In this document: piece by piece, positions 4,455 to 28,171 of the stretch
Position numbering within the stretch: position 1 is the first letter of the stretch
How the letters are laid out: each line of letters opens with the position of its first letter
From: Macrostomum lignano
Taxonomy: Eukaryota
Length of the DNA stretch: 64,000 nt
Assembly: GCA_002269645.1 (NCBI GenBank)
Contig: NIVC01000232.1
Coordinates: forward strand, 133,684-197,683
Direction: 5' to 3'
The notes under the pieces: model-generated
What the model was told of the DNA's origin: nothing
What the model saw: the letters and a program-made list of their open reading frames with translations, nothing else
Databases searched by the model: none
Translations under genes and position numbers: made by a program

Positions 4455-7400
4455 ATGACGCCAAACTGGAGTCTGGCCAGACAGTTGAACGAATGGACCC
4501 GCGCTCTACTGCACTTGAAAGCCTGGCGTCTCGTCTTTCTCATACCGTCAGCTGTGCTGCTGTTCTCCGGCGCTTACCTGTCAATCATTCTGAGCAGATT
4601 CGATCTGGACGCTGACTCGGAGCTGCGGTTCTATCGGACTGTGGATATTGGAACTGCCTGGAAACTTCAGGTGGGAAAACAGGCCAGCGAAAGCGACACT
4701 CTGCAGCTTGAAACCGTCAGCGGCATACGCTGGGACAGTCAGCTTGACCTCTTCTGCACTGTTCCCGCAAGGACTTGCATTGAGCAGTTGCTAACCAGAG
4801 CGAATAATAACAAAGGTAAACTACTTCTGCAGACGGTTGCCAAGGCTAAGTCTTCCCCAATAATGCTGGAGTGCTTAGCAGAGAACTCCAGCAGCTTTGA
4901 CTGCAGTCTTCTCTACCAGCCGAAAAAAGCCAAGCCTAGTCAGCTAAGCGCGCTGAAAGAAATCAATCTGCTTTACTTTGAAACTTATGCCAACGGTAGC
5001 GTGAACAGCACTTACAGAAATCCGCAGGTCCCAGTTTCAACCGACACTGTACAGCTAGGCCCCAAGCGAAAGAGCAAAAGTTATGCAACTCAAGCAACAA
5101 GCTGTTTCGCGCAGTTGTAGCAGTTTCTTTCTCGATCAGTACCATGGCTGTAATTCTCTACTTCAGCTTATCCACAGCGTACTGTATCCATCGGCTTAAG
5201 ATGCATAATTTTCTAAAGCTACAACACCTCAGCGGTTTGTGTGCGACGGCTTTCTGGCTACCAACGTTTGTCATCACTATCGTCGAGTGTCTGGTACTGT
5301 CAGGGTGTTTGTGGCTGGCCAGGTTATCAATGCCCAGAATTGAGACTGGCATCTCATAGGGCTTTTCGAGTATTGATTGTATACTTTTTGCATAGCATTA
5401 GCCTGGCTATGCTGGCAATACTTTGCGCTACAGTTTTGACTTACGCAGCGGCTTGCACTCTGATGATGCTGCTGAACATGGCATTGATAGGGGTTTCGCG
5501 TACGCGCCAGGCCTCCTCGAAAGCGGAGCCACCGCTGTCCTGTACCTTTACCCGCCTATTAGCAGTCTGCAAGTTGTGGAAAGTCACGTAGCATCCGATG
5601 GCATTGAGCTGCTGACCCATCAGGCTGCAGCTCATCACAGGAGCATTTTTCCCTGCATGTTCGCGACACCCATCATAATAGCGATTGCTATTCTTTACCT
5701 GGACTTCATCCTACCAGATGGTAACGGACTCTGTCTGCCAGTTTATTTTCCAATCACTAAACGATTTTGGATGCCGGACAAATTGGAGCAGACAGACACA
5801 ACAAATCTCATCGATGGTGGGGTGACAGTAGACAAGAAAGAACGTTGCGCTTTCGTTGAAGACATGCCCTCTGGCTCAGTTCCGATTGCTGTGGTGGATC
5901 AAGTCAGCGTTGCTTACCGCGACAGTGGAGACTGCTGCTGCTGCTGCTGCTGCTCCTGCAGTGCCAGCCAGGCTCTGAGACAGGTTTCATGTGAGTACTG
6001 AGAATTTCCTGTGGGAAGTTTTCTCGCCGTGGTTTGCCCGCGGGAGGTTTTCAAGTCAAATCTAGTCTATAGACAATGCTGGACTAGATTAGAACTAGAC
6101 TAGACTAGACTAGACTAGGCTAGACGAGATTTCAAATCTGATTAAATTTCATTTGAAATTCCGACTGGAAAAAAGGCTCGGTGGGAAAACATCGCTGCAG
6201 GAAAACTTTCTTTGGGAAATAAATTTAGTTTATTAGTTTAGTTTAATTTATTTAGTTTATCAGAAACCTGAAAGCGGCTTAATTAAGTGTGCTTTTTGTC
6301 TAGCTGGTAAAAAAACATTTGCGTTTGCCACCCTCTAGTTAAGATCTACCCCGGTCACATTACCTGGCTCCTTGGCAACAGTGGTAGCGGCAAGTCCACA
6401 CTGCTCGACTTCTTTCCGGATTTCATCAGCGAGCAGCCGCCCCGTCAGTTGTCTGCGGATCCGTCACGATGCTTAATGGCTTCCAGGCTACGGAGCCACT
6501 GGACAGACTTCTCGTTCGTAGAAAAGTGGCCGCCAATCTCAGCCAGAACGCAAACGACGGCATCTGCACCTGCCTGACCGTGCGGCGAGGCCTGTCACTG
6601 ACGCTGGCCAGTCGGGGCTGCGTCATCGGCTCCGATACCACAGCAACGCCACGCGAGTTGCTGACCCGTCTTGGCCTGGCCGGGGTTGAAGACCAGACGC
6701 CGGCGGATCTGAATCTCTGCCAGCGAAAGCTGCTGAGCCTCGCCAACTGTTTAGCCGGATGCGCTCAGCTGGTGCTGCTTGACGAGCCGACCAAAGGCCT
6801 GGAGGCGGCGGCGAAGCAGCGCGTCTGGCGTCTTCTCCGAGACATCTGTCGACAGACAGCTTCGGTGTCTATTGTGGTAGCCAGCAGTCAAAATGACATG
6901 CCAACGATTGCGCCAGACGAGCGAATAGTCTACCTGTCTGGCGGTCAGGTTGCCGGGGTTGGCACCAAGAATTTTCTAGCGCAAGCGTTCAACTGCAGAC
7001 GATATTGCGTGTCTGCGACTCTGCTGCAGCCGGTGGAGAATTCAGCTGCCGCTGTGCAAAATCTGCTGAATCGCCTGCCAAACGGTGTTGTGGAAAGATC
7101 ATCTGGGCAAAGAGGAAGCAAGCTTAGCTTGCTGGTTGAACCCGAACTTTTGCTAGGCTGTGTTCGAACCCTAGAGTCAGCTGTGGGCCAGGTAATAACT
7201 CATGGAGGTATTCAACTCGGACCGATGCAGCCTCTGAGATTGCCAAAGCGTTGGCTAGCCCGAGACAATGTCAGCAGACTCAATTTTAACGAACTCAACG
7301 AATCCGATATACTCGTTGCGGATAGCAACAGTACTGACAATGGAAACAACAATAATAAGAGCAGCAGCAGCGCCAGTGAGAGCGGCAAAACTCCCTTGCA

Positions 7401-10400
7401 GCCTAAAAGAAACCATCAGACAATGAGAAAGTGAAAATTAATCGAGAGCGCCTGCATGTTTCGCCATTCACTCGGATTTGCACTCTCGGCAGTGTCCACG
7501 CTAAGCGCCTAGTCCGAAGCCGGTGTGATTTCGTCACTCGCCTAGTGGTGCCTATTTTGCTGTTAATCTCCTTGCTATTAGCGACAGCCTATGAGAGGGC
7601 ATTGTATCGAACTTCAGCACCAGATTATTTAATAAAATCAAGAAAAGTTCCGACTACAGTTAATTTGTCCGCGAAAATGTCTAATCCAATGGAGGAAGCA
7701 CTTGTGCCGAACATCTGCGTGGTTGACGAACTGGAAGGTGAACAGGAGGCAGCTTTAAAATATCAAGACTGTTCAGGTTCAAACTCGATAGTTCTTAGAA
7801 AATCTGGTCAATTAAATCTGCTGGAATTTCTGCTAGTTCAAAGCCCAAATTTCAAACTGAACGACTCTTGTCTTCAAAGCTGTTTAGTAATTTATTGTCA
7901 GCCATGGAATCGTGTCTCCAGTGACAACGGCAACAGAACGGTCACGATTGCTGTGCTAGACGGCTTGCTGGCTGCCAACAGCACACCGGCTAAGAGTAGC
8001 CATGTACACTTGTATCGCACAGCAGTTGCTAAGGTTTTCAAGCATTTTGATGCTCAGTTGGATCTCAGCGATTTGAAGCTTGCGCAGCAGACGCAGCAGT
8101 ACTTGCCTGGCGGATTCTTAGCCAAGTGCAGTGGTCTTATTTTTCTTCTAACCGCTTTTTCTGTATTTCCAGCCTCGTTTTTTAACCAGGTGGCTGACGA
8201 CATGGACTCGAATGTTTATCGATATCTCACCTCATTGGGAATGAGCCGACTGGGCTATTGGCTTTGCACCTTTGTAATTCATTGGCTGCAATACGGAGTC
8301 TATTTTTTGCTGTTGACATTGGCACAAAACACGTGGGACCGATTTCGCAATCAATACTACCTGTCCTGCATCTTTGTGCCAGTATTAATATTCGGGACGT
8401 CATCCAACTTGCTCTCCGTGTACACAACAGTAGCGCTAACAGGTAGGCAAAGCAACACTATGAAGTTTGCTTACTTTGTACTGGTCATAATAACACCATG
8501 GACCTTGAATGGAGTGTCGAAGCTAGGAAATATTCCTGTTCTAGCACTAAACTGGTTGGTTCCTCAGGCGGCCCCATTGTCACTCATTCTATTCGGAATG
8601 AATCTGGCTGGTCAGACTATCACGCACGAGCATGATGCTGGCGAACTGATCCTGTATCGACTATGGGACATGCAGGAAGGACTGTGGAATTATGCTTTAG
8701 TCATTAACTCTCTAATCGCTATGCCAACTCATGTAATCATATTGAGCTTGCTATTAGCCTGTTCAGTTTGCGATGTACATCGGTGCCTTGGCCAGCATTT
8801 GGATTGCGTTGGTAAAGGCTTGTTCGGTCGCAAGCGAGAAACCAACAGGGAGATGCAGCCAATGTCCTCTAGGCTCGGGCCCGCTGCATCGTCAAGTCAC
8901 CACTGCATTCTGGACGTGCGCAGCCTGTGGAAAACTTGTCCGGTCAGCGGCTTCCCGCTTGTTAAAGGAATCGGATTTCGTCTGGCGGAGGGCCAAAGCT
9001 TCAGTCTGGTCGGCCCTGGCGGCTCCGGCAAGTCAATAACTGCCGCCATTGCTGCTGGCGAAGTGATGCCAACGTCTGGCGAATGTCGCGTGTTCTGCGA
9101 CGGCAGCCTGTGCAAGTTCGGTGCCCAGCCTTGGAGGCATCGGCCGAGCTGCGGCGCCATCGGCTACTGCCCGCAGTACAGTCCGCTGTTCAAGTGGCTC
9201 ACCGTACAAGAGCATCTGTTTTTCTATGCTCAACTCCGCGGCCTCAAGTCCTGTATTGCGGGAAAGCGGATTCGAGAACTGCTGTTGAATCTGGGCCTGA
9301 TAGAATACCAGCAGCTGCGCATTGGCGGACTGGACCGTCGAACTCGCAGCTTGGTTTGCTTGGCAGCCTCTCTATTATCCAAGCCTTTGTTGCTGGTAAT
9401 TGATAACGACTTCCTCGGCAACGCTCGGGCTTATCTGCGCAAGCATGCAGTGAAATCTGTCTCGAATTATTCAGACACTCGAACTAGTCTGACAATTGTA
9501 GCTACAGCGGAGTCTGTCAAGCAGACCTTTACTCACTTCAGCAGCTCTGACGGAGATTCTAACGAGTTTCAAACTAACGACAGCGATGGAGAGGAGGAAA
9601 AGGATGACGCGGCCAGCGGCGAGGTGGGTTCGGTCCGAGGATCAAACGATGGAGAAATTTCCAAGCCCGCCAGCGAAGTGTTCGGCGTGCTGCATCGCGG
9701 GCGAATCGTTGCCATGGGAACGCGTAGTCAGCTAAGAAGCATGTAAGACAACTTGCTACAGTATTTTTCAATTTTCTCTTACTAAAGCGCCCTGATAGAG
9801 AGGTTCTAAAAGTTTGAAATCGATGCATCAAATTTTTTTCCAAGTAAAACAAACAATGACTGAGATATATACATTCATTCAAAATCGTAAGCCTAAAAAA
9901 TGGTTATCAATTATGCTCGTAATAATCGTTTTATTTAATAGTCTAATGATAAGTTAGCAAAGTTTGTTTTAAGAAATAAGCTTACCATCATGCAGAAACC
10001 TCTGTCAATCAAAATTACGCAACACTGATAAAACAAATGCAAAACGTACTTTTTTACCCAGTTACGGCAATTGGTTCGTTCTCGACATCACATTGGACAC
10101 CAATCCTTCAAGTGTTGGCTTCAGGATCGAGGAACTATATTTGAAAGTTACTAGTGCCATACTGACTCATTTTAAAGGCGCATTGCTTCTAGAGGAGACC
10201 CATTGCTGGCTGCAGTTCTGCTTACCGTCTGGTTCTGTTGGTCGATTATCGAATGCGCTAAGCTGGTTGGCCAACTCACTGACTGTGGAGCAGGCGGTCC
10301 TGTACACGATGCCTTTGGACCAGGCAATGGCTCTGCAACAATTAAGCATCATTAAGCAACATGTACAAGACGAAGATATCGCAACGCGAAGCGCGCATCA

Positions 10401-10894: not shown

Positions 10895-12601
10895 ATGGCT
10901 CTGAGAATCTTAGAGGAAACCAGAGCGGATATCATGGAGCAAGTAAAAAATGCTCTGGAGGCAACATCACTTCATGGCTTGCCCAGAGTAGCGTCAAACA
11001 AGCCGATCTATATCCGCATCCTGTGGCTGCTCCTGTTCCTGTTCATGCTTTCCCTGTTTCTTAAAGGCTTTATTGAGTTCATCAACAAGCTGCAATCTCA
11101 TCAGGTGACCACGTCCTTCGAAGCGAATTCGCTGCCATTCCAGTTTCCCGATGTCTACGCCTGCTACGAGAACGCTCTGTCTGGAAGCTATGCGTCGAAC
11201 GTTGACTCGAAATCGGCTCAGTTAATCAACGACAAGCTGCTCAATGCCAGTAGCGTTTTGAAGTCGTTTTTAATGCAGAGAAACTTATCTAGCACAGAAA
11301 TGTTGGCGAAAGAGCGCGAGTTGAGCTTCTTTTATCCGCAGTCGCTGCCTTTTAAACTACTGGTTGACTCGCTAAGCCACAGAATCGAACAGGGAGTTCT
11401 GAGCAGTGGAATTGTCTTCATGGAGAGCGGCGGCTCTCCGGACTACACTAACGTCCATGCCACGGTGTTCTATCATCCGCTTTACCTCCAGTGCTTCAAG
11501 TGGTCGTTGGATAGAGCTACGCAGAAAAAGTTGGCCAAAAGTGGTTTATCAACTGGACTCGCTGTGACACTTTTAATTGACGGGAACTCCACTGAGGTGA
11601 CTTCTGGAGGCACGAAAATTCTTCCGATGGTTTACACCGTTGGTGAAGAAGCTGCTCTACCTGTTTCGGACTGGACCATGCTGTCGAACGACTTTTTCGG
11701 ACCCGACCGAACTTCCGGCGTTCGAGTGTTCCTGACCCCTCCAGGAGAGTACCCGTCCGACTTTGTGAACTCGTTCTCGCTGAGCCCTGGTATGCATCAC
11801 AAAGTTGAAATTAGCATGACTCAGCAAGAGTACAAGGCGGGTCAGTTCAACTGTCGCGCGGAGACCCCCGCGGTCCAGTTCGTGAACCCATACGACCAGA
11901 CTCCTTACAATCACATCTACAGCTTTTCCTATTGCTACTACTACGAGTACCATAAACAGTTCCAAGCGCTCTTCAATCTATCTGGAGACGTTAGTCCTCT
12001 GCCCTGGCCATTGGTTGGGAAGAAGTATCTGCTTAATGTGACTGGCGAGCCAAACTTTTTAGCAATGAGCCTCGATCCGCTGTCCGACTTTAGCGCTGTT
12101 GAAGATGCTTACGAAGTTGCACAAGATAAATGTGGGTCACAGCGGCCCTGCACTACCCGGGACTACAAGGTGAGCATCTCAAGTTCCGATTGGCCTAGTC
12201 AGAGCTCTCTGATGCCTTTCATCCAAAGCACGGTCAGACAGGCCTGGTTGCGGGCCAAATCCAAAAACCAAAGCGTGCCAGCGCTTGACTTCCTATTGAC
12301 TGGGAACAGTTCTAGTGTGACCAGCTACGTGCGTCAAAACATGCTAAAGGTGAATTTTAAGCCGCGCAGCGCTTTGTCCGACAAAGTGACATTCTCCAAG
12401 GACTACGGTATTTCTAACTTCATCTCGGACGTTGGTGGAATCATGGGCATCTATTTGGGCATGTCGCTGCTCACACTGTGCGAGCTGATAGAGCTTTTCT
12501 ACGACTTGATCACGGCTTGGAACACTCAGAGACGACCGAAGACGGTTGAACCTGACAAAACAATGTGTAAAGAGCCGACTTTCGTGGAAAGCAGTCAGTG
12601 A
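10895..12601 (+). CDS. DEG/ENaC family sodium channel subunit, copy 1 (intronless, 568 aa)
   Basis: N-terminal TSLHGLPR (HG motif), TM1, FPDVYAC, GVRVFL..PPGEYP, DWPS, and TM2 ISDVGGIMGIYLGMSLLTLCEL. Confidence 0.95.
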   Translation: MALRILEETRADIMEQVKNALEATSLHGLPRVASNKPIYIRILWLLLFLFMLSLFLKGFIEFINKLQSHQVTTSFEANSLPFQFPDVYACYENALSGSYASNVDSKSAQLINDKLLNASSVLKSFLMQRNLSSTEMLAKERELSFFYPQSLPFKLLVDSLSHRIEQGVLSSGIVFMESGGSPDYTNVHATVFYHPLYLQCFKWSLDRATQKKLAKSGLSTGLAVTLLIDGNSTEVTSGGTKILPMVYTVGEEAALPVSDWTMLSNDFFGPDRTSGVRVFLTPPGEYPSDFVNSFSLSPGMHHKVEISMTQQEYKAGQFNCRAETPAVQFVNPYDQTPYNHIYSFSYCYYYEYHKQFQALFNLSGDVSPLPWPLVGKKYLLNVTGEPNFLAMSLDPLSDFSAVEDAYEVAQDKCGSQRPCTTRDYKVSISSSDWPSQSSLMPFIQSTVRQAWLRAKSKNQSVPALDFLLTGNSSSVTSYVRQNMLKVNFKPRSALSDKVTFSKDYGISNFISDVGGIMGIYLGMSLLTLCELIELFYDLITAWNTQRRPKTVEPDKTMCKEPTFVESSQ

Positions 12602-13307: not shown

Positions 13308-14923
13308 ATGAAGCAGCAAGTAAAGGCGGCCTTAGAATCGACCTCGGCTCACGGTCTACCGAGAACCGTGAGCAGTAAACCGCTGCTCATCCGTCTAATA
13401 TGGGTGGCTTTATTTCTTCTCATGGCCGGCTGCTTTTTGCGAGGATTGTTTCTGTTTTCAATAAAGTTTGCTGCAAATCCGCAAACTAGCACTTTGGAAG
13501 CGAACAAAGTGGTGTTCCAGTTTCCCGATATTTACGCCTGTCACGAGACTCCTTTCTCTGCCAGCTACGCAGTCAATGTGGACAGGATTGCTGCAAATGC
13601 GATTAATTCAATAATGAACTCCACAACGCCATCCATACGGGAATACTTAGCAAAAAATATCTAAACGAGACAGACGAAAGCAAAACCATGCCGCCAAATA
13701 CATTCTTCTATGTATTCTCTCTACCATACTCGCTTATGGTCGACGCGCTGGCCCACAGGGCCGAGCAATCTGTCATCTCAAGTGGTGTCCTGTACAGGGA
13801 AAAACGTGGCACTCCCCACTACGAACATATTGAAGCGACCAGCTTCTTTCACCCGATTTACCTTCGGTGCTTCAAGTGGACCCTGGACAAAGAATTTCAG
13901 ACTGCTGTGTTGAAGTCCGGCTCGTGGGCCGGCATCACTGCAACGCTGCTCATCGACTCGAGCGCATCGGAGATCGAATCCAATGGCGCACCAATTCAGC
14001 GCATGGTGTACTCAAACTACAGCTTGCTCTCAGTCTGGGAGTGGTCTCTTTCGCTGCGCGACTACTTCGAGGCCGACAGGAGCGCCGGAATTCGAGTATT
14101 CCTCGCACCGCAAGGCGAATACCCGTCCGAGTTCGTGAGCTCGTTCGTCCTGGGTCCGGGAAAGCACCACACAGTCGAAATCGAGATGCTGCAGCAGGAG
14201 TACACAGCTGGCCAGTTCTCGTGTCGCGGTGACAGTCCCGCAGTGCAGTTTGTGAATCCGTACGATGACACTCCGTACAATCACACCTACAGCTATTCCT
14301 ACTGCTTCTACAAGTCATATCATGAAATCATTCAAAGATTGTATAATCTCTCGGGCGATATAGGACCTTTGCCATGGCCTCTTCGGGGTAAAAAATATGT
14401 CTTTAACCTGACTGGAGAGCCAAACTTTGCCAGTCTGAAGTTGAACCATTCTGACTATTCGACTATAGAAGACGCCATTGCTAATGTCGAGGAAAACTGC
14501 CAGTTGGATCGGCCGTGCAGCAGCCTTCAGTACCGCTCGAGTGTCTCCAGCGCTGACTGGCCCATAGACAGCTCCATCTTCTCCTTCATCAACAGCACGG
14601 TCAGGGAGGCCTGGACTCAAGCCAACGCCAGGAACCTCAGCGTGCCTGCTCTGGACTTTCTAATGACTGGAAACGATTCGGTTGTGTCATTGTATGTTCG
14701 CAAGAACCTGCTTAAAGTGCACTTTAAACCGTCGCAAACGCTAAGCGATAAAATTGTGTTCTCAAGGGACTATGGACTGGAGAACTTTGTTGCAGAAATT
14801 GGCGGCACTATGGGAATCTACCTGGGCATGTCGCTGCTCACCTTGTGCGAACTATTCGAACTAATTTACAATATTGTCGCTATCTACAAGTCGAAGAAGT
14901 CGCAGCAACAAGTTGAAAACTGA
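13308..14923 (+). CDS. DEG/ENaC subunit, copy 2 (one -1 frameshift in an A-run at ~13655)
   Basis: ORFs 13308-13664 and 13688-14923 join as LAKKYLNETDESKTMPP if one A is added to AAAAAA. All family motifs are present (SAHGLPR, FPDIYAC, AEIGGTMGIYLGMS). Confidence 0.9.
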
Positions 14924-15545
14924 GTAGGGCAATAATGTCACGAGGCAATAAAATACAATATTTGTATTTTCAAGTATTTTCAAAACGAATGTCGTCACTA
15001 TATTGATCATATGCCGGACTTCATCATTCATATTTTAATATTTCACAGGTAAAATTACGTAAGAGTAATTATAAAGACAAAACTTGCTAATCATTAAAAG
15101 TCACTCGTATAGAATTGTATTTCTGTAACATAAGTCAAAGTTTTGTTATTATTTGCCTCCTAACATTAATGGGAAATTTCGTTCGTGTTTTCTACCACTC
15201 ACGAACAGTGGCCAGTGCAATAAAGGTTTATCGCGTCCTTTTCAAGCCATAGTCCTGTGACATACGGCAGTTATGTTGCTAAGCAACGATTAGGCAAACA
15301 ATAGACGCTCCCGACAATAATTGAGAGATCGAGACAATGCTGGGATTAAGTGAAGAGGGAAATTGGCGTTCCTAATTTGGCACCGAGTGGGCATCGGTCG
15401 ATTGATTACTAACTCTAATGAGGCAAATTACTCACATCAGCCTCGCAGAGAGATACGAGTACAAAGCAAGCCAGTTCATCTGCTAATATATTTGAGTCAG
15501 GCATACTCTGAGCAACCTTGTCGCTAAAGACCCAGAACAGAAGGC

Positions 15546-17186
15546 ATGCATCACCTGAGAGCTGCTCTCGAGACCACTACGGCTCACGGCCTGTCGCGCC
15601 TTGTCACCGGCAAGCCCCTGTACGTGAGAGTCGCCTGGCTACTGCTGTTCTGCGTCACCATGGCGCTGTTTCTCCGCGGTTTCGTCGAGTTTGTTGGGAA
15701 GCTTCGATCCAATCCGGCAACAAACTCGCTGGAAGTGAACGGCGCCAGCTTCCAGTTTCCTGACGTGTACGTCTGCTTTGAAAATCCGATCTCGGGCAGC
15801 TATGCCGCTAATCTCCATCCACATTCAGCTGCCGAAATTAACAACCGAATCAATCGGACCTTTGATATACTGTCAGCATACAGCTTTGGATACGGTAACC
15901 AAGATTTGTTCATTAGAGGCTTTTCGTTTGTTCAGCCTCACTCTTTACCGTATCAACTGCTGGTGGATACTTTAGGAAAAAGGCATGAGCAGAGCATTTT
16001 AGTCGGCGGCATAGTTTACAAAGACTCGGCTGGAATGCCGCACTACCGTAAGTTGAATAGCAGTATATTCTATCACCCGATCCACCTGGGATGCGCCAAA
16101 TTCGTACTCAGTGGCGCCGAAGCCGAGCTTTTAGGAAGAAGCGGAGCCAATTCCGGACTGCTACTCAAAGTTCTACTCGATGAAAACTCCTCATATATAC
16201 CGGCGAACGGAGCGCCCATCAGAGACGCAGTGTATACGATGGAGTCTGCAATACCGGTCTCCGACTGGAGCCTCTCGTCCGGCGATCTCTTAGCCCCGGA
16301 CCGAGCATCGGGACTTCGAATCTACTTGGCACCTCCCGGCGAGTACCCGACCGACTTTGTGACCTCATTTTCACTCGGCCCGGGAAAGTATCACACCGTG
16401 GAGATTGACATGAAGCAGCAGGAGTACAAGGCTGGCCAGTTCGACTGCCTGAGCCCGATGCCGGATGTGCAGTTCTTGAATCCGTACCACCGGACGCCGT
16501 ACAATCATTCTTACAGCTACTCATACTGTTTCTACTATGAGTACCAAAGTCTCTACCAGAGAGCGCTGAACATGTCCGGGGATAAGACCCCGATGCCTTG
16601 GGAACTGAGACACAAAGATTACATGTTCAATGTCACTTCAACGCCGAATGTTCTTGATATTTACCCGAACTCAGAGTTAATGAATAATATTGACGATGTT
16701 CAACAGCATGCAACAAAAGCTTGCGAGTCCAAGCGACCCTGTAGCACTATTGAATACAGCGTGAGAATATCCAGCTCCGACTGGCCAACACAAGGATCGC
16801 TCACTGGATTCGTCAACAGCACAGTAGGAGCCGTGTGGCTCCAAGCAAAGATGTTTCACCTGGACGTGCCAGTGCTTGACTTTTTATTCAACGGTAGTGA
16901 CGTTGACGTGCTCACTTACCTGAGAAAGAATCTTCTTAAAGTGTTTTTCAAGCCGAAGAGTCTGCAATGCGACAAGGTCAGCTTTTCTAGAGACTACGGA
17001 GTGTCAAACTTCATATCGGACGTTGGCGGAATCATGGGCATCTACTTGGGAATGTCGATTCTGACTCTGTGCGAGGTTTTCGAACTAATCTACGATCTGA
17101 TTAGCTATTGCAACTCACAGCGCAAAGCAAAGAGTTCCACTTCGGTGGCAGCTTCGTCCGAGATGTCAGTCAAAACACTGCATTGA
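15546..17186 (+). CDS. DEG/ENaC subunit, copy 3 (546 aa, intact)
   Basis: TAHGLSR, FPDVYVCFEN, GLRIYLAPPGEYP, SDVGGIMGIYLGMS. Confidence 0.95.
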   Translation: MHHLRAALETTTAHGLSRLVTGKPLYVRVAWLLLFCVTMALFLRGFVEFVGKLRSNPATNSLEVNGASFQFPDVYVCFENPISGSYAANLHPHSAAEINNRINRTFDILSAYSFGYGNQDLFIRGFSFVQPHSLPYQLLVDTLGKRHEQSILVGGIVYKDSAGMPHYRKLNSSIFYHPIHLGCAKFVLSGAEAELLGRSGANSGLLLKVLLDENSSYIPANGAPIRDAVYTMESAIPVSDWSLSSGDLLAPDRASGLRIYLAPPGEYPTDFVTSFSLGPGKYHTVEIDMKQQEYKAGQFDCLSPMPDVQFLNPYHRTPYNHSYSYSYCFYYEYQSLYQRALNMSGDKTPMPWELRHKDYMFNVTSTPNVLDIYPNSELMNNIDDVQQHATKACESKRPCSTIEYSVRISSSDWPTQGSLTGFVNSTVGAVWLQAKMFHLDVPVLDFLFNGSDVDVLTYLRKNLLKVFFKPKSLQCDKVSFSRDYGVSNFISDVGGIMGIYLGMSILTLCEVFELIYDLISYCNSQRKAKSSTSVAASSEMSVKTLH

Positions 17187-18159
17187 AATGTCAATTGAAG
17201 AGACTCTGCTTTTAATTAATCAATTACCTCTGAAAATCAATGCGTCAATAATTCTCTTATAATCAAGATTCGTGTGCGCAGGAATTAATTTTTACGAAAA
17301 CTAAATTCAAAGCGTTTGTTCAGAAAATGTAACCAGTGGTTCGAACGAGTCTGTTGGAGTGCCCTTTAATTTCATTAATTCAAAAGTGCAAACTTATTCA
17401 GCCGTGGATACGTCGCTCTAATCATCACGGCTTGTTCCTAACTTTTCATGGGAATTAGGCGTCAAGTCACTTTACATGAAGTATCCCCAGTTTTTACTTG
17501 CATGTGAGCACTTCCTTGGGCACCGATATGTATTGTTGAAGTCTGGGTTATTTTGTGTCCTAAATGCGAACTCTACTAGATTGTTCGATTCCTTAATTTG
17601 CATCCCAGCGACTTCGCACACTTTTGTCTCGTTATTTCCTTTATGCAACGATTACTCTTCATTTAGGCCTTGCTATAATTAACTATTGCTGTAGCCTACA
17701 CTAAGCAACAGTATCAATTTTCTTAGAATGCTTTTCTAATACAGTAAATTTACTCTGCACCCTGTAATTCAGGTATTTTCCTTCTACATGCTAAAGCAAT
17801 TTCGATAAAAGACTATTTTTAGAGAACAGTTTGATTCACTCGTACATTGCAAGTTCCTCAGTAGCATACAAATGTTTAACAATGAAGATGCTTTCTACAT
17901 GTTTTTGACGACGATAATATAATATAACAAAGACCATAACGACAAAGACGATGTCCATGTTTTCAAATTAACCTTTCGACTCATTGGCTCATTGGACATT
18001 ATTTTGTCAACTAGCTCGTACAGCTAGTGACGACCTTTTCTAAAAGTGTTCTTTGTTACATTTATAAATTTGCTTAAGGGATGAGGGTTTACAGGAATCA
18101 TATCCGAGCTGGATAAACACTCAATAGATAGTTCATACTTTAATTTTACATGTTGCCAA

Positions 18160-18420
18160 ATGCAAGCTACCGTTGCAACAGCAGTCAGGTCACCGACATC
18201 ATACGGACTGTCGCTTGTTAGTCACCAGCACACCAGTTTTCGTGTGTTTGTTTTGCTCATTATTCATCTCGCAATGCTAGAATTATTTGCCAGGGCCCTC
18301 CGGGAGCTCTTGAGCAAACTAAAGTTAAATCCGACGACAACCTTCTTGTAACTGAGTAGTGCAACAAGTTCCAGTTTTCCCGATGTTCCTATGTACGCCT
18401 GCTTTGAAAATCTGCTTTAA
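18160..18420 (+). pseudogene. Truncated DEG/ENaC relic (N-terminus, TM1 and beta1 only)
   Basis: Translates as MQATVATAVRSPTSYGLSLV...ELFARALRELLSKLKLNPTTTFL*LSSATSSSFPDVPMYACFENLL*, colinear with the first ~85 aa of the other copies. HG is changed to YG, there is an internal stop, and homology ends at TTAA 18417-18420. Confidence 0.8.
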
Positions 18421-18837
18421 ATCCTATCGCATTCATGGTTAAAGGTACATACGTAGCCATGATTACCGGAGACAAGCTGATCTGAGACGCCGTAGGGCAC
18501 GGAGTACCTTTAACCTTATGATTACCAGTGGCATGCTGTGCATGCCATCGTTCATTCTGTCAATTGACCATAGACAGATTTGAAGTCGATGGGAAAGCGA
18601 GTTTAGACAGAATCATTGTCTGACTCAACCAAATGGAATGCTATGCATGCCAAGGCCAAAAAACTGTTTGTATTATCATACTGCGTCGGAGTGTCACAAA
18701 ACAAATAGAAAACGACATACATTGCATGCACAAAGGTAAATCTTGAGAACATAAGGGCAAATGAAGCTAGCTGCATGCAAGTGAATGAAAATAATTTTAG
18801 CAACAGTTCGATTACAGTTTCAGCAAAGCGCCAGCAA

Positions 18838-19300
18838 TCAGTTAGCCGAGTGCCACTCAAAGAAGCACGGCTCCAGGCAAAGCCCAGGCTGACCGTCACA
18901 GCCTTGGCAGAAGTAGACGGTCCGCTTTTTCAGTCTGCGCTGGTAACAAACTCGGCAACGCTTGGTAGGCCGTTATTGTGCTGCGGTAGCGGGTAGCTTT
19001 TCCAGCCGGTGATGAATGTCGCCTGGCTGACGGGGAAGAGCCTGACGCTTAACTCTCGATCGACCATTTCCGCTGCTTTCAATCAAGTGCTTTACACACC
19101 TTTCAGTGTAGCTGAGAAAGCTCATGGATCCACCTAGATGTCGGTACACAATCCAGGAGTTGCGAACCAGCTGCTGTAGCAGAAACACCGCCAACTTTAC
19201 GAACCATTTGTGCGTTCGGCGGCATGCGCTGTTAGGCTGGGCTGCGGCATCCATCCGATCCACACCTCCCATGTTGTGATTATATTGCTTTACGACCGAG
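18838..19300 (-). mobile_element. piggyBac transposase C-terminal relic
   Basis: The minus strand reads VKQYNHNMGGVDRMD...RRTHKWFVKL, then after one premature stop the Cys-rich domain RCRVCYQRRLKKRTVYFCQGCDGQPGLCLEPCFFEWH. Confidence 0.88.
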
Positions 19301-19660
19301 CCGAATGTCTCCTCGAAATCTATGAATAGACAATCAGGATCGTCTGGCGTATCGGCATCTCATCAATGACTCGGCGAAGAGCTAGGATCTGCGTCACTGT
19401 GCCGCAATGGGGCCAGAAGACGTTCTGCTCAGAGCGCAGGTTCGAATCCAGCACCGACTGCAACTGCGATTACAGCGCCCGATCAAACAGATTCGCAGCG
19501 GAAGATTGAAGGCAGATGCCTCGGTCCTCTTCTAGTAATGTGGTACCCCGCTTCTTTGGAATAGCAACGATGTGTCTCCGTCGGCAGCGTCAGATCGTCT
19601 GGTAGCGGGGGGATGTCAGCGCGTTAACAATGGCGTCGAAGTCAATAATCTGAGGTAGAG
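19300..19660 (-). mobile_element. Decayed RTE-type reverse transcriptase fragment (N-terminal RT motifs)
   Basis: The minus strand reads IVAIPKKRG...RGICLQSSAANLFDRAL*...LRSEQNVF...VTQILALRRVIDE...IDFEETFGSV, matching the LINE RT pattern IPKK/RGI.L/EQ.GF/QI.ALRR/FIDF..AFDSV, with stops and a frameshift. Confidence 0.72.
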
Positions 19661-20454
19661 GTTGATTCATTCATAAAATGCTACTGTGAGTGAGTAATAA
19701 AACACTCGAAGTACAAACTCCGTTATTTCTAAAAGAAGACGTCCTTTCTGTTTTTTCTTGTATTATTAGGCCACATCTCTGATTTCGCTTACTGAACTCA
19801 AAGAATAACGCTAACGCCGACGAGTTGAACTGTTTCGTAAACTAACATCGGTCTTGTATACGGCAACTGTCAGAATTGAAGAAGAGAACACCGCAAGCAG
19901 AAAAACCGGAACAACAGGAAGAGGAGCACGCAATACTACTCGTAGAATTAGGTGATTACAAAATTTTGTTCCCAGACTTGCGGTCTGAAAGTGGGAGTTC
20001 GTGCGTTTGGACATTCTTACATAATTCGCTCTCTCTCTCTTCTCACTCTCCGGTGTGCTAAAGCGATCTCTTCATAGCCACTTTTAAATACTGCTGAAAG
20101 CGAATGATACGACAGAGCAATAGAAGATGTAGCTGACCAGTCTGCAAAATAGGTTCATCACTGACACACAGGTGTTTTATTTCTACAATAATGGAAATCA
20201 ATTAGCTGCACTGACACACGCTTTTGCTTGTGATTTGGCAAACAATACGGTAGATTTGATGAGTATTTTATGCTATTAACTGAGCTGGTCATTAATTAGC
20301 ATTACATTAGCTCAACAAATAAATCCTTTCAACTGAACTTTTCGCAAATAGATTGTTTGCAATCAGCCAGAAAACCGGGGCTAAAAAGTATAACCGATCT
20401 GTAGAGCAAGCAGTTAAGTAGATTTGTTCCTAGCAAAAACCTCAACTGAGCAGC

Positions 20455-22116
20455 ATGAAGCAGCTGTTTCGATCAGCGCTGGAGTCCAGCAGCGCTCATG
20501 GACTGCCGAGAACCGTCAGCAGCGAGAAACCACTGTTTGTCAGGCTGATCTGGTTGGCTCTGTTCTCCTTCATGCTTGTCTTGTTTTTAAACAGCCTAGT
20601 TCGATTCACTGAGAAACTCATCGCGAATCCGCAAACCAGCTCGATTGAGGCGAACTCCGTCACCTTCCAGTTTCCGGATATTTACGCCTGCCATGAAACT
20701 CCCGTGTCGGCCAGCTACGCGGTAAATGTAGACAAGAAGATGGCACTGGAGATCAACTCTCTATTAAGTAATACAACAAGGAAAATTCGACAATTTTTTA
20801 CAACTAGAAATCAGTCTGGTAGGGACGAAAACATTCGGCCGGTTACATTCGTTTACGTGCATTCGCTTCCCTACTCGCTTCTGGTTGACGCGCTGGCCCA
20901 CAGGGCCGAGCAATCTGTCATCTCAAGTGGCGTCCTGTATAGAGGAAAACGCAGCACTCCCCAGTACAAACATATTGAAGCGACCAGCTTCTTTCATCCC
21001 ACGTACCTTCGGTGCTCGAAGTGGACCCTGGACAAAGACTGGCAGAAAACCGTGTTGAAGTCCGGCTCGTGGGCCGGCATCACTGCAACGCTGCTCATCG
21101 ACTCGAGCGCATCGGAGATCGAATCCAATGGCGCGCCAATTCAGCGCATGGTGTACTCAAACTACAGCTTGCTCTCAGTCTGGGAGTGGTCTCTATCAAT
21201 GCGTGACATCTTTGAGCCAGACAGGAGCGCCGGAATTCGAGTATTCCTCGCACCGCAAGGCGAATACCCGTCCGAGTTCGTGAGCTCGTTCGTCCTGGGT
21301 CCGGGAAAGCACCACACAGTCGAAATCGAGATGCTGCAGCAGGAGTACACAGCTGGCCAGTTCTCGTGTCGCGGTGACAGTCCCGCCGTGCAGTTTGTGA
21401 ATCCGTACGATGACACTCCGTACAATCACACCTACAGCTATTCCTACTGCTACTACGCGTTGTATAACAAAGGTCTTCAAGAAACGCTTAACATGTCCGG
21501 AGGGATCGGTCCTCTGCCGTGGCCTTTGAGAGGGAAGAACCATGCATTCAATTTTACCGGCGAGCCCAGCCTGGCAGACACGTCCGCGGCTGAGGTGAAT
21601 CCCGACTTTTTTACTGAACTGCTTGACAATATCGATAAATACTGTCAGCTGCAACGTCCGTGCACCAGCCAGCAGTACAAGGCGAGCATCACCAGTGCCA
21701 AATGGCCAACTCAAAGCTCGCTTGCTTCCTTCATCAACAGCTCGGTGAAGCAGACCTGGACTCAAGCCAAGGCCAGGAACCTCAGTGTACCTGCGCTAGA
21801 CTTTCTGATGACAGGAAACGCATCCAGTGTCGCTTCGTTTATTCAAGAGAATGTTTTGAAAGTGCAGTTTAAGCCGCTTGCTGTACTCTGCAATAAAGTG
21901 GTGTTCTCAAGGGAATACGGCTTGGAAAACTTTGTATCGGATATCGGAGGCGTCATGGGAATTTACCTGGGCATGTCACTACTAACTCTTTGCGAACTGC
22001 TTGAGCTGCTGTACGACACTCTTGCTTGGTGCACTTCAAAGAGTAGACATTCCGCGAATGCAGTTGGGAGTCATGTCGCCTCCTCGAAAGCTACGTCTGT
22101 TGTAGAGATAAGCTGA
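20455..22116 (+). CDS. DEG/ENaC subunit, copy 4 (553 aa, intact; closest to copy 2)
   Basis: SAHGLPR, FPDIYACHE, SDIGGVMGIYLGMS. Near-identical central block shared with copy 2. Confidence 0.95.
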   Translation: MKQLFRSALESSSAHGLPRTVSSEKPLFVRLIWLALFSFMLVLFLNSLVRFTEKLIANPQTSSIEANSVTFQFPDIYACHETPVSASYAVNVDKKMALEINSLLSNTTRKIRQFFTTRNQSGRDENIRPVTFVYVHSLPYSLLVDALAHRAEQSVISSGVLYRGKRSTPQYKHIEATSFFHPTYLRCSKWTLDKDWQKTVLKSGSWAGITATLLIDSSASEIESNGAPIQRMVYSNYSLLSVWEWSLSMRDIFEPDRSAGIRVFLAPQGEYPSEFVSSFVLGPGKHHTVEIEMLQQEYTAGQFSCRGDSPAVQFVNPYDDTPYNHTYSYSYCYYALYNKGLQETLNMSGGIGPLPWPLRGKNHAFNFTGEPSLADTSAAEVNPDFFTELLDNIDKYCQLQRPCTSQQYKASITSAKWPTQSSLASFINSSVKQTWTQAKARNLSVPALDFLMTGNASSVASFIQENVLKVQFKPLAVLCNKVVFSREYGLENFVSDIGGVMGIYLGMSLLTLCELLELLYDTLAWCTSKSRHSANAVGSHVASSKATSVVEIS

Positions 22117-22949: not shown

Positions 22950-24635
22950 ATGCAGCAAGTGAGAATAGCTGTGAGCTCTACGACTTCGCACGGACTGCCA
23001 AGAGTCGTGTCGAACAAGCCTGTGTATGTGCGGATAGCCTGGCTCCTGCTGTATCTGCTCATGCTCAGCCTGTTTCTCAAGAGCTTCTTTGAATTCGTTC
23101 AAAAGCTACAGTCGCAGAAGGTGACAACCTCAATAGAATCGGGCGTTGAGACTATCCGTTTCCCGGATGTGTGCATTTGCTTTGAAAATCCGATATCGGG
23201 GAGCTACTCCAGCGTCATTGACAACAGCACCGCGGCAACAATTAATGCTACCTTCAGCGTTGTGGACGAAGAAATTAGAAGTTTTGCGATCAGGCATAAC
23301 TATACTGAAAAGAAGCTTCAAGAGCTAAAAGTAGAAAGCAGCTTCTTATATGTGTTCGGTCTGCCCTACACGATTTTATTTGACAGTCTGTCTCATAGAG
23401 TCGAACAGAGCGTCATATCGAGCAGCATCATCTATATTAACGACGTTGGTGAGCCAACTTATGCTCAGATTGACACAAGAGCTTTTAACCATCCGCAGTA
23501 CCTTCGATGTCTACAGTGGACAATCAACAGCACCTGGCAAGAGAAAATGACCACGACCGAGTCGTGGGCTGGACTCACCGTCACCTTGCTGTTGGACACT
23601 GACTCGTCATTCTTCGAGCAGAATGGCTCTCCAATAAAGAAGCGGACATTCATTCCAGATGGCACTGAAGTCCCGATGTCCGATTGGACCTTCTCAATTA
23701 GCGGCTACAGAGAGTCGGACAGACTTGCCGGACTGAAGGTGTTCCTGACTCCGCCTGGCGAGTATCCATCGGACTTCGTGCACTCGTTCTCTCTCGGTCC
23801 GGGTAAATATTATACAGTTGAAATTGGCATGAACCGGCATTGCCTAACTGAAAATCAGTTCGACTGTGTTGGAAGCGGCCATCCAGAAGTCCAGTATGTC
23901 GATCCGTACGATATGTCACCGATCAGCCATGCCTACAGCTATTCCTACTGCTTTTACGAGGCTTACCACCGCTTGACCCAGCAGCTTTTTAATCTGTCCG
24001 GGCATATTGGTCCGCTGCCATGGCCCCTGAGAAGTCGGAAGTATCTGTACAATATCTCTGCCCGACCGCACTTTGCCAGCGTTGACCACGACAGCTCAGT
24101 ATGGCTTGAACAGACAAAACTAACGGAAAAGATCCAACAAGCTTGCAAACAGAAGCGGCCCTGCAGCACACTGGACTATGCTGCCAGCATCTCCAGTACC
24201 AACTGGCCGACCCAGAACTCCCTCTTTTCCTTCATCAACAGCTCAGTAAGGCGGACTTGGACTAGAGCCAAATCCAGGAACCTTAGCGTACCAGCGCTCG
24301 ACTTCCTCATGACCGGAAATGCGTCCAGTGTGGCGTCGTATGTTCGCAACAATTTGCTGAAGGTGCACTTCAAAGCAAAAAGCGTCAGTGGCGACAGGAT
24401 CGTTTTTTCTATCGACTATGGATTCTCGAATTTTGTTTCTGAAGTAGGCGGCGTCATGGGTATCTACTTGGGCATGTCACTATTGACATTATGCGAGCTG
24501 CTGGAGCTGCTGCACGACTTTGTTGCCCGGTTTTGCCGACGGCGCGATGCAGACACATCTCATGGAAGTACTAGTAACGTCGAAGTGTGTAATGTACATG
24601 TACAATCGCCTAATTGTAAAATTTCTCCTCAGTGA
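22950..24635 (+). CDS. DEG/ENaC subunit, copy 5 (561 aa, intact)
   Basis: TSHGLPR, FPDVCICFEN, GLKVFLTPPGEYP, SEVGGVMGIYLGMS. Confidence 0.95.
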   Translation: MQQVRIAVSSTTSHGLPRVVSNKPVYVRIAWLLLYLLMLSLFLKSFFEFVQKLQSQKVTTSIESGVETIRFPDVCICFENPISGSYSSVIDNSTAATINATFSVVDEEIRSFAIRHNYTEKKLQELKVESSFLYVFGLPYTILFDSLSHRVEQSVISSSIIYINDVGEPTYAQIDTRAFNHPQYLRCLQWTINSTWQEKMTTTESWAGLTVTLLLDTDSSFFEQNGSPIKKRTFIPDGTEVPMSDWTFSISGYRESDRLAGLKVFLTPPGEYPSDFVHSFSLGPGKYYTVEIGMNRHCLTENQFDCVGSGHPEVQYVDPYDMSPISHAYSYSYCFYEAYHRLTQQLFNLSGHIGPLPWPLRSRKYLYNISARPHFASVDHDSSVWLEQTKLTEKIQQACKQKRPCSTLDYAASISSTNWPTQNSLFSFINSSVRRTWTRAKSRNLSVPALDFLMTGNASSVASYVRNNLLKVHFKAKSVSGDRIVFSIDYGFSNFVSEVGGVMGIYLGMSLLTLCELLELLHDFVARFCRRRDADTSHGSTSNVEVCNVHVQSPNCKISPQ

Positions 24636-25250: not shown

Positions 25251-26888
25251 ATGCAGAAGTTGCAACTAGCGCTCACTCAGTCCACATCTCACGGACTGCC
25301 TAGAGTGGTCTCAAACAAGCCCGTCTACGTGAGAATAGCCTGGCTGTTACTCTTTCTGCTCATGTTTAGCCTCTTCCTAAAGAGCTTCTTCGACTTTGTC
25401 AACAAACTTAAATCTCAGTTGGTGACGTCTTCTATTGAATCGCGGAGCGAGAAGTTCCAGCTCCCGGATGTGTACGCTTGCTTTGAGAATCCTGTGTCTG
25501 GAAGCTATTCCGGTAACATTGGTGGCAGCACCGCCAGAGCCATCAATGACAGCTTCAATAGTCTAGATGAAGAGCTAAGGAACATTAAAGTTAAACACGG
25601 ATTTACTCAGAAGCAGCTGCAAGCGCTTGTCATGCAAAACAGTTTCGCCTACGTGTTTAGTCTGCCCTACAAACTGCTATTCGACAGTCTGACTCACCGA
25701 GTCGAGCAGAGCGTCATATCTAGCAGTGTCAGCTTCATCAGCGCCAACGGAGAGCTGAGACGAGCTGAATTGGAAGCCAATGAGTTCAACCATCCGCAGT
25801 ACCTTCGCTGTCTGCAGTGGGCCATCAACAGCACCTGGCAGGAGAAAATTATCTCAGACGAGTCGTGGGCCGGACTCACGGTCACTTTGCTTCTAGATAA
25901 CAACTCGTCCTTCGTAAAGTCAGGAGGATACCCGATTCCGCTGAAGGCTTTTCGACAAGACGGCACAGGCGTACCAGTCTCTGACTGGACTATGTCAGAG
26001 AAAGGTTACTCAGAAGCTGACAGAGTGGCAGGGCTGAGGGTGTTTTTGAGTCCAGCTGGAGAGTACCCGTCGGATTTTGTGAACTCATTCGTTTTAAGTC
26101 CAGGAAAATTCCACTTGATCAAGATAGAACAGATTCGGAACGTACTCGCCGAAAATCAGTTCGATTGTGTTAAAAGCCGGCACGAAGTTCAGTTCGCCAA
26201 CCCGTACGATCTCTCAAAGTACAGTCACTCGTACAGCTACTCCTACTGCTACTACTATGAGTACCACAAGCTTTTCCAGCAGTTCTTCAATCTGTCTGGC
26301 GAAATAAGTCCACTTCCGTGGCCTCTAAGAAGTAGGAAGTATCTATACAACTTTTCTAGTTCACCAAATTACATGGATTTGGATCCGTCTGTGTTGATCA
26401 ATCAGGCAACCATTACAGAAAAGGTTCGACAAACCTGTTTGACAAAACAGCCTTGCAGCACACTGGACTACAGCACCAGCATCTCTGGCGCTGACTGGCC
26501 TACTCAGAGCTCCCTTGCTTCCTTCATCAACAGCTCAGTGAGACAGGCCTGGACTCGAGCGAATTCCAGGAACCTCAGTGTACCTGCGCTTGACTTTCTG
26601 ATGAATGGGAAGGCATCCGATGTGGCCGCATATGCTCGAGAAAACCTGTTGAAGGTGCACTTTAAACCTAAGAGCATTAGAAGTGACAAGATAACTTTCT
26701 CCATTGACTACGGTGTTTCTAACTTTGTATCGGATGTTGGCGGCATCATGGGGATCTATTTGGGCATGTCGCTGCTGACTCTTTGCGAACTGCTAGAGCT
26801 GCTGTTCGACCTTGCTGCCTGGAGTTACTCAAAGAGCGATAAATTCAAGTCGGCTTCGGAAGAAACTGATCCTGAGACAGCGACTTGA
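25251..26888 (+). CDS. DEG/ENaC subunit, copy 6 (intact; ATG at 25251)
   Basis: TSHGLPR, LPDVYACFEN, SDVGGIMGIYLGMS. The ORF track starts at an upstream GTG (25218). Confidence 0.95.
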   Translation: MQKLQLALTQSTSHGLPRVVSNKPVYVRIAWLLLFLLMFSLFLKSFFDFVNKLKSQLVTSSIESRSEKFQLPDVYACFENPVSGSYSGNIGGSTARAINDSFNSLDEELRNIKVKHGFTQKQLQALVMQNSFAYVFSLPYKLLFDSLTHRVEQSVISSSVSFISANGELRRAELEANEFNHPQYLRCLQWAINSTWQEKIISDESWAGLTVTLLLDNNSSFVKSGGYPIPLKAFRQDGTGVPVSDWTMSEKGYSEADRVAGLRVFLSPAGEYPSDFVNSFVLSPGKFHLIKIEQIRNVLAENQFDCVKSRHEVQFANPYDLSKYSHSYSYSYCYYYEYHKLFQQFFNLSGEISPLPWPLRSRKYLYNFSSSPNYMDLDPSVLINQATITEKVRQTCLTKQPCSTLDYSTSISGADWPTQSSLASFINSSVRQAWTRANSRNLSVPALDFLMNGKASDVAAYARENLLKVHFKPKSIRSDKITFSIDYGVSNFVSDVGGIMGIYLGMSLLTLCELLELLFDLAAWSYSKSDKFKSASEETDPETAT

Positions 26889-28171
26889 CAGTCTTTGCCT
26901 AATATTTGCTACCATGACGGGTGGCCTTGGTATTGTATAAATAATTTGTTTATTGTGTACGAATCCTTGACTAAAATTTGATGTAAAATGAGCTGGAAGA
27001 GGCCTGCTTTTGACCTCTTTTGTAACTCAGAATGTATGCATTCTGATGCTGATGTCAGCATTCTCGGAGCCTACCGACAGTAGTGACTGTTGTTGCGGTT
27101 TCGATTCGGACATGTTGGACTCTCATCCCAGACCAGTTGTAGCATAAATGAAAAAAGTAGTGCGATGCGGTGGTTTTGTTGTTTGTCGAGTCTTGTGTGA
27201 AATTTGAAAGATTGCGTGAGGATCTTGAAGATTTCGGTGGCATGTGCTGGTTAATAATACATTGTAAATCAGCTCACTGAAATTTTCTGAAGTTTGTGGG
27301 CGTTATAACAAAATACTCCTTTGTTAAAACGAATTAACATACGGTAAGTAATATGAAATGTCAATATGTCATACTAATTAAATGCTGATAAACTAATGAT
27401 GCCGTATTATTTTTGAGGAACTTGCAAAATAATCTCATGACACACATTCTAGGAAAGTTTTTAAATTTAACGTGGTACTTTGGTGAGATTTTTCTTAAAT
27501 TGTACAGTACGGTACGCCACAAAATAAAGTACAGCAAGGTACGAGTAAAGCAATATACTAAAAATAAAAAGAAGATATTACTGTATACTAATAAACGCAA
27601 GCAGACTGACGCTCCTTACCTATTATTTTTGCTTTCTTTTTTCTTCTCTACTAGTAGACAATAGGTCTTAACAGAAGTTTAAAAAGCTCGAAATTTCACA
27701 CCGGTCAAAAGGAAGAATCGTTCATAAGCTAGAGACTTCGCTTGGTCCAAATGTCTTGCTAGTTTCTTCCGTTAACGAAATTAACGAAATTTTGGGCTTG
27801 TAAAAGCAACTCGCCTAAATGAGTATTACATTTGCCATGTGACTTGGGCTCCAGAAACTTGTGTTAGCTAACTAGCAATAATATCAATCAAACAAATTGG
27901 TTTACCAAAATGAAACTCATAGATGGAACTTAAGACGTCAGCACACAGCATCTGTTAGTCTAGATAATACTATACAAATATACTAGACGTTGTTCGCGGA
28001 TGTAATTAATATTTGGCTATAGATACCCTGACTGCAGGCTAATCAAATTCTCGAGAGTACCAAAGCAGACAAGCAGAGCAAACATTGTTGACCCTATAAG
28101 AGAAAACCCTAGGATCAAAATGAGACAGAATATAATATATCGAATTCGTGGAAACAGAGTCTGCCGAAATT

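Follow-up and report, generated by a model that had tools for sequence, protein, structure and literature searches.

A short diverged island inside a gene-conversion mosaic between two tandem DEG/ENaC channel genes of Macrostomum lignano

In the genome of Macrostomum lignano, two members of a tandem array of DEG/ENaC channel genes share a central segment that has been made nearly identical by gene conversion, and within this segment a patch of 25 bp has kept the divergence of the unconverted flanks, possibly under selection. The array lies in a window of 64,000 nucleotides (contig NIVC01000232.1 of assembly GCA_002269645.1, positions 133,684 to 197,683 of the forward strand), and all coordinates given here are positions in this 64-kb window. 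It extends over 10.9–35.7 kb of the + strand and consists of eight genes, each with one exon of about 550 codons, referred to as copies 1 to 8. The two genes involved in the exchange are copy 2 (13308–14923, +) and copy 4 (20455–22116, +). Copy 4 is an intact open reading frame (ORF) for a 553-aa DEG/ENaC subunit, and copy 2 is broken as assembled, being recovered by tblastn with the copy 4 protein as two pieces in different frames. Unless the assembly is in error, there is essentially no doubt that interlocus gene conversion has taken place between them.

The stretches 13907–14306 and 21052–21451 can be aligned gap-free, with 7145 bp between corresponding positions throughout, and 11 of their 400 bases differ, namely those at 13990, at 14242 and at nine positions inside 14050–14074. 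A preliminary description of this locus had reported such near-identity, with two substitutions and one dense patch, between much more diverged flanks and with copy 3 in the middle, and these observations are all borne out. Over the tract, copies 2 and 4 have a nucleotide identity of 97.2%, against 61.6% for the 5' flank and 63.0% for the 3' flank; at third codon positions the corresponding values are 94.7%, 40% and 47%. By the Nei–Gojobori method (NG86), the proportion of synonymous differences (pS) is about 0.02 in the tract against 0.80 and 0.66 in the flanks, which are saturated, and the proportion of nonsynonymous differences (pN) in the flanks is 0.26–0.29. On the copy 2 side of the tract (13907–14306, +), only 2 of the 375 bases outside the patch differ, both synonymously, and the 3' edge is sharp at 14306/14307, immediately past an invariant YSYSYC motif. 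A GENECONV-style permutation test was applied to an eight-copy codon alignment (1183 polymorphic columns, 2000 permutations). The longest run shared by copies 2 and 4 covers 110 polymorphic sites (14078–14241), and no permutation exceeded 33 (P < 0.0005), in agreement with the conversion that had been proposed, and additional runs of the same pair cover 67, 49, 35 and 32 polymorphic sites.

Copies 2 and 4 are each other's closest paralogs everywhere along the genes. The intervening copy 3 (15546–17186, +), which is intact, is not involved, with 58.8–59.0% identity to both in the tract, and over the tract columns the six remaining copies are 53–65% identical to copies 2 and 4. Constraint at the nucleotide level, such as an RNA element or a gene on overlapping sequence would impose, was ruled out, the near-identity being confined to the one pair; antisense and alternative-frame ORFs are by-products. 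A different concern is that the tract might be an artefact of assembly or polishing, a consensus chimera of two more different paralogs. Errors of a long-read type are hinted at by a homopolymer frameshift in copy 2 and by a perfect palindrome in copy 7. The tract, however, is internal to both genes and has unique flanks of about 60% identity on each side; both frames are open through it, and the two lone differences and the patch are kept. Moreover, neither collapse nor mis-polishing predicts the graded, older 5' zone and the excess of G+C at third codon positions (GC3) described below, and an artefact of this kind is judged very unlikely.

The exchanged region had been described as a 400-bp tract that skips a single patch. 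The patch is indeed skipped, but the tract belongs to a larger mosaic, about 580 bp long, in which four islands and two age classes can be distinguished. This structure was resolved with a two-state hidden Markov model (HMM) on the alignment of copies 2 and 4, with difference rates of 0.41 and 0.017, which was favoured over one and three states by the Bayesian information criterion (BIC). The high-identity zone delimited by the model runs from 13727 to 14306 and is broken by four islands at background level, all on the + strand: 13795–13808 (5 of 14 bases differ), 13852–13858 (4 of 7), 13894–13906 (7 of 13) and the patch itself, 14050–14074 (9 of 25). A three-state HMM likewise puts 14050–14074 and 13894–13906 in the background class. 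What had been taken as the 5' end of the tract, at 13907, is therefore the third island, beyond which high identity continues to about 13727. On the copy 4 side, the mosaic occupies 20872–21451 (+), with the recent tract at 21052–21451, and contains no indels.

The 5' part of the mosaic (13727–13906 in copy 2, 20872–21051 in copy 4; + strand) appears to be older, with an identity of 87% and a pS of 0.24. Outside the islands, 7 differences are found in the 146 bp of the 5' blocks and 2 in the 375 bp of the 3' tract (Fisher p = 0.0026), and from this contrast we infer that conversion recurred, in two or more episodes that differ in age. GC3 is 0.72–0.74 in the tract and 0.55–0.57 in the flanks of copies 2 and 4 (p = 0.0002 and 0.0025), and the other paralogs have a GC3 of 0.585 in the tract columns (p = 0.003 against the tract of copies 2 and 4). 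Such an excess is what long-running GC-biased conversion would produce.

Sequences of about 60% identity are very poor recombination partners, owing to mismatch-dependent anti-recombination (cf. PMC6511840 and PMC4663472). The central segment must for this reason have stayed similar all along, and recurrence of conversion resolves the mechanistic difficulty. In the scheme proposed, copies 2 and 4 are old tandem paralogs of a flatworm-type DEG/ENaC channel in direct orientation, 7.1 kb apart with copy 3 between them. Their central segment, which from the 'VDALAHRAEQSVISS' motif to the 'YSYSYC' motif encodes the beta-ball and upper-palm core, would have been overwritten repeatedly. The mechanism would be ectopic gene conversion, i.e. 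repair of a break templated by the paralog. The last event would have spanned 13907–14306 and be very recent, and an older one would have covered about 13727–13906.

The patch occupies 14050–14074 (+) in copy 2, where it encodes LSLRDYFEA (CTT TCG CTG CGC GAC TAC TTC GAG GCC), and 21195–21219 (+) in copy 4, where it encodes LSMRDIFEP, residues 247–255 (CTA TCA ATG CGT GAC ATC TTT GAG CCA). Its nine differences divide into five synonymous changes at third positions and four that are responsible for the amino-acid differences L/M249, Y/I252 and A/P255 (copy 4 numbering). A concentration of at least 9 of the 11 tract differences within one 25-bp interval was obtained in 0 of 400,000 random placements (analytic bound about 1e-7). 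To the two sides of the patch lie 143 bp and 232 bp with one difference in each, so that divergence forms a narrow peak centred on the amino-acid differences. Within the patch, pS is 0.79 and pN 0.19, values indistinguishable from those of the flanks. The simplest reading is that the patch was never homogenised since the duplication and has been kept in place.

Two other histories would place the difference later. According to the first, conversion was complete and point mutations then clustered in one copy, through error-prone repair or positive selection. Multi-nucleotide events exist, and the loop encoded here is variable among paralogs. The supposed cluster, however, would have put nine changes into 25 bp beside 2 in the remaining 375 bp, the synonymous share of the differences (5 of 9) exceeds the 23% expected under unfiltered mutation (p = 0.037), the reading frame is retained, and the divergence equals that of the flanks. 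Of all the alternatives this seems the least probable, and it is given hardly any weight. According to the second, the full 400 bp were homogenised and a micro-conversion of at most 45 bp then imported the patch from a third paralog outside the window. Many synonymous differences would be expected of sequence from another functional gene, the family is large and only 64 kb of the genome is in view. In the window, neither version of the patch was found elsewhere on either strand with up to 3 mismatches allowed in 20, which ruled out an in-window third-paralog donor as well as a nearby inverted template. Copies 2 and 4 also remain nearest to each other inside the patch, at 18 of 27 nucleotides and 6 of 9 amino acids (at most 15 nucleotides and 4 amino acids for other copies). 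As this proximity is at flank depth, the only eligible donor would be a copy 2/copy 4 subfamily member that is not in view. Import is thus regarded as improbable, and it would show as a paralog outside the window carrying CTTTCGCTGCGCGACTACTTCGAGGCC or CTATCAATGCGTGACATCTTTGAGCCA.

The place of the patch in the protein depends on the assignment of these genes to the DEG/ENaC family. Pfam ASC (PF00858) matches copy 4 with 122.4 bits (E 3.4e-35, cut-off 23.6) over profile positions 2–455 of 455, and copy 1 with 156 bits (E 2.3e-45, same cut-off). The hallmarks of the family were found: an N-terminal HG (H15-G16), 'FQFPDIYAC' after the first transmembrane helix (TM1), and the selectivity filter 'GIYLGMSLLT' (G-x-S) in TM2, together with two transmembrane helices and the conserved ectodomain cysteines C79/C187/C305/C332/C397/C403. 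The filter triplet is G-M-S in all eight copies (copy 4 residues 506–508) and in the consensus of 36 sequences, where ASICs have G-A-S and FaNaCs G-I-S. With a profile of 36 sequences, end-to-end alignments were obtained to Aplysia FaNaC (7yvb, E 2e-111), Malacoceros FaNaC1 (8on7, 9e-97) and chicken ASIC1 (cASIC1; 6ave, E 6e-76). FaNaCs are the best structural matches, and the finger region and the loop align only ambiguously.

In copy 4, the patch residues 247–255 sit between the invariant W245 and D256-R257-x-x-G260. The next segment, 'AGIRVFL', aligns with cASIC1 A244-G245-IKVQIH, which is strand beta7, as had been supposed when the patch was placed just before GIRVFL. Similarly, 'GITATLL' aligns with the 'GLEIML' that contains E220, and the conserved flatworm 'PVSDW' with cASIC1 'LPVW' and FaNaC1 'LHEW'; the alignment numbering reproduces the known positions of R191, E220, D238 and E239. 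By these alignments the assignment of the patch to the C-terminal half of the beta6–beta7 loop, directly before beta7, holds. In three concordant modes of MAFFT, copy 4 F253/E254/P255 correspond to cASIC1 D238/E239/T240, and residues 247–252 form a six-residue insertion restricted to the flatworm clade. It is thus reasonable to regard the patch as probably adjoining or overlying the positions of ASIC1 D238 and E239.

The preliminary description connected this loop with two ligand sites, and the two connections fared differently. That it lines the acidic pocket of ASICs agrees with the literature: the ASIC1 beta6–beta7 loop holds D238, and D238 and E239 pair with D350 and D346 of the thumb in the acidic pocket (PMC11474038). 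The same source describes the alignment of this loop across subfamilies as ambiguous. Of the pocket carboxylates considered (cASIC1 E220, D238, E239, D346, D350, D408), three could be mapped, E220 to T210, D238 to F253 and E239 to E254, and only the last is acidic in copy 4; by that criterion the channels are therefore not ASIC-like proton sensors. As for the FMRFamide site of FaNaCs, the peptide pocket is formed by alpha1–alpha3, the beta6–beta7 loop and alpha6, and that of FaNaC1 includes the loop residues D234–G241 (PMC11026163). The loop thus contributes, as had been stated, but D234–G241 are N-terminal of the aligned tryptophan and therefore upstream of the patch, so that the link with FMRFamide contacts would hold only at the level of 'same loop'. 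Any role of the patch itself in ligand or gating specificity is hypothetical. A structure predicted with AlphaFold2 from a 7-sequence alignment has a mean pLDDT of 46, with values below 50 over residues 216–259 and a strand at 261–266.

The state of copy 2 bears on whether selection could act on its patch. Relative to the other copies it carries a one-base frameshift, at an A6 homopolymer (13652–13657, +) that is followed by an in-frame TAA (13662–13664), so that it reads in frame 3 across 13308–13661 and in frame 2 from 13664. An intron as the cause was ruled out, there being no GT...AG arrangement that spans the stop. The halves on either side of the break are otherwise without stops and have evolved under constraint. 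Derived amino-acid changes number 15 in copy 2 and 12 in copy 4 in the 5' flank, and 22 and 30 in the 3' flank, which gives no excess in copy 2; flank dN/dS is about 0.23, a value based on the 3' flank alone since the 5' flank is saturated at synonymous sites. Copy 2 was therefore constrained until recently, and the break is either a very recent pseudogenising lesion or an assembly error in the homopolymer.

With these elements the persistence of the patch can be weighed. In the reading preferred here, selection would have removed conversion products that spanned the patch, since L/M249, Y/I252 and A/P255 would distinguish the two subunits, and synonymous differences a few bases away would have hitch-hiked. 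Each patch difference lies no more than 4 bp from an amino-acid difference. The islands are concentrated at paralog-variable positions, the mean identity of the six remaining paralogs being 0.37 there and 0.54 otherwise (p = 0.013), and by the ASIC1 alignment they lie in or beside connecting loops. Positions 168–180 and 223–232 of copy 4, which are even more variable among paralogs, were nevertheless homogenised, and low constraint alone therefore fails to explain the escape of the patch.

The main competitor is neutral patchiness of repair, in which conversion is real and the islands are by-products, left by heteroduplex rejection at mismatch-dense spots or by short-patch restoration of the recipient strand. 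It is favoured by the presence of four islands rather than one, by their location at paralog-variable positions, where mismatches would be densest once divergence began, and by the possibility that copy 2 is a pseudogene; discontinuous tracts are, in addition, documented in yeast, Drosophila and humans (e.g. PMC4154643 and PMC4404656). It must explain, however, how 25 bp at saturated synonymous divergence persist beside 143 bp and 232 bp that were convertible, how the equally or more variable segments just named came to be homogenised, and why both edges of the patch are within 4 bp of an amino-acid difference. Neutral patchiness is a possibility to be taken seriously, and still one that we would rather doubt than adopt.

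Several points weigh against selection. The data are those of one genome, and the patch is not unique, there being three further islands, so that short-patch repair or heteroduplex rejection could yield the same picture. With only two lone differences in the tract, a single event for the left block (143 bp) and the right block (232 bp) is not distinguishable from two. Copy 2 is frameshifted as assembled and, if this is real, there would be no present-day selection on its patch. As to function, the FaNaC1 contacts align at about copy 4 225–232, a segment identical in copies 2 and 4, and the predicted structure, at a pLDDT below 50 in the loop, is unusable for judging the proximity of patch and pocket. 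The suggestion that selection had preserved a specificity determinant gains from the flank-level pS, the three amino-acid differences and the homogenisation of more variable neighbours, while selection as the cause is something that we infer from the pattern, because with a single genome the patch may also reflect neutral patchiness of repair or have been imported from a paralog that is not in view. Retention of the patch by selection against conversion is the best reading of the data, is not proven, and could turn out either way.

If selection does hold the island, the pattern would be a cheap pointer to specificity residues, obtained from sequence only and nominating M249, I252 and P255 of copy 4, and it would join the few cases in which selection visibly resists concerted evolution, as an unusually sharp one (25 bp). 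If the islands are mechanical, the locus would show, as a useful natural record, the way in which ectopic conversion tracts are shaped by the density of mismatches. A further proposal, which is tentative and more doubtful than selection itself, is that ligand- or gating-specificity residues of an orphan, flatworm-specific clade of DEG/ENaC channels are marked by the 25-bp island and perhaps by the three smaller islands as well. The 25-bp island would lie in a lineage-specific extension of the beta6–beta7 loop, at the position of the ASIC acidic-pocket carboxylates, and concerted evolution would have performed a natural 'chimera experiment', though we would not lean on this picture. If true, a functional site would have been pointed to ahead of any known ligand. 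The principle is already established and the pattern is of a well-described class; either way, its value is local to this gene family.

The family is well represented in M. lignano, which has many members. An exhaustive profile search yielded 2206 relatives, the top five of which are M. lignano proteins, the best only about 50% identical, and word-indexed protein searches with a single sequence, a 7-sequence profile and a 36-sequence profile returned one M. lignano protein each. In protein searches for an orthologous locus none was recovered, the sole close relatives being M. lignano paralogs at no more than 50% identity. The proteins of copies 1, 3 and 5 were not found in a collection of 15 billion proteins, and exact-protein contig look-ups of copy 4, of the copy 2 ORF and of P0001 gave no match and no independent assembly.

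The remaining genes of the array, all on the + strand, are copy 1 (10895–12601), which is intact and encodes 568 aa, copy 5 (22950–24635), copy 6 (25251–26888), copy 7 (28169–29065 plus 31437–32222) and copy 8 (33999–35684). Copy 7 is interrupted by an inverted-repeat insert of about 2.37 kb (29062–31435, inside 28169–32222), after which the reading frame resumes minus one codon. The ends of the insert are terminal inverted repeats of 615 nt (29062–29676 and 30821–31435) that are 100% complementary and made of 161-bp tandem units; it looks like a very young mobile element of foldback type or a palindrome made in assembly. Copies 7 and 8 share an identical run of 47 bp (31513–31559 and 34969–35015) that covers 24 polymorphic sites, the 95th percentile of the permutation maxima being 21, and this may be a second, small conversion tract within the array.

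Besides the genes of the array, the window contains two adjacent ABC-transporter-like ORFs upstream of it, which were checked against Pfam, and transposon remnants downstream. Judged by eye from the translations, a 399-aa ORF at 48391–49590 (−) has the look of a Tc1/mariner transposase, an ORF fragment at 36706–37575 (+) is reverse-transcriptase-like, and a third, short ORF at 18973–19272 (−) resembles the tail of a transposase. Other coding ORFs are found at 45976–47460 (−), 40746–41411 (+), 55878–56669 (+) and 6469–9746 (+); among them are one of 494 aa with a caspase-like 'QCCRG', one that is glutaminyl cyclase/peptidase-like and one that is WD-repeat-like. Long minisatellite arrays with units of 8–27 bp are numerous; they lie at 32.3–33.1, 36.1–36.7, 41.5–42.6, 47.4–48.0 and 54.3–55.5 kb, and further minisatellite arrays at 56.6–57.3, 57.7–58.8, 59.1–61, 62.4–63.2 and 63.7–64.0 kb. 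The arrays at 36.2, 47.5 and 62.4 kb have a 17-bp unit in common, and strong skews in strand composition coincide with the minisatellites.

Comparison with known systems concerns both the channel and the process. The flatworm genes share with FaNaC and ASIC structures (7yvb, 8on7, 6ave) the HG, FPxxxxC, the cysteines, G-x-S and a beta6–beta7 loop that is followed by a G-[IV]-[RK]-V strand. Their identity to these channels is low, the phmmer alignment to solved structures reaching only the protein ends, and their beta6–beta7 loop is about 14–20 residues longer. As to the process, the patchy tracts described in Drosophila and in humans (PMC4154643 and PMC4404656) likewise contain unconverted markers within one recombination zone. 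Those tracts are allelic events of a single generation between near-identical homologs, whereas copies 2 and 4 are paralogs and their patch is 36% diverged and fixed in the genome.

Closer parallels are offered by duplicated genes in which selection opposes conversion. In the ATP1A1 duplicates of the frog Leptodactylus (Mohammadi et al., bioRxiv 10.1101/2020.08.04.234435), selection counters conversion and keeps a few amino-acid differences between tandem copies whose evolution is otherwise concerted. The primate red/green (L/M) opsins (Teshima & Innan 2008; PMC3924837) are tandem paralogs in which conversion is frequent and divergence peaks at the spectral-tuning sites in exon 5. The evidence in both systems goes further: the ATP1A1 substitutions were tested by engineering and are shared across species, and for the opsins there is proof of the functional sites, with orthologs of different species retaining the differences, while copies 2 and 4 are known from the sequence of one genome. 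Their island is also much narrower than that of the opsins (25 bp), the flanks beyond the conversion zone are already saturated, and one partner is possibly a pseudogene. The likeness to the opsins is nonetheless that a short internal stretch with amino-acid differences stays diverged amid homogenised sequence, and such a peak of divergence is, in theory, the signature of selection shielding a small target from ongoing conversion, as seen in the opsins (PMC3924837).

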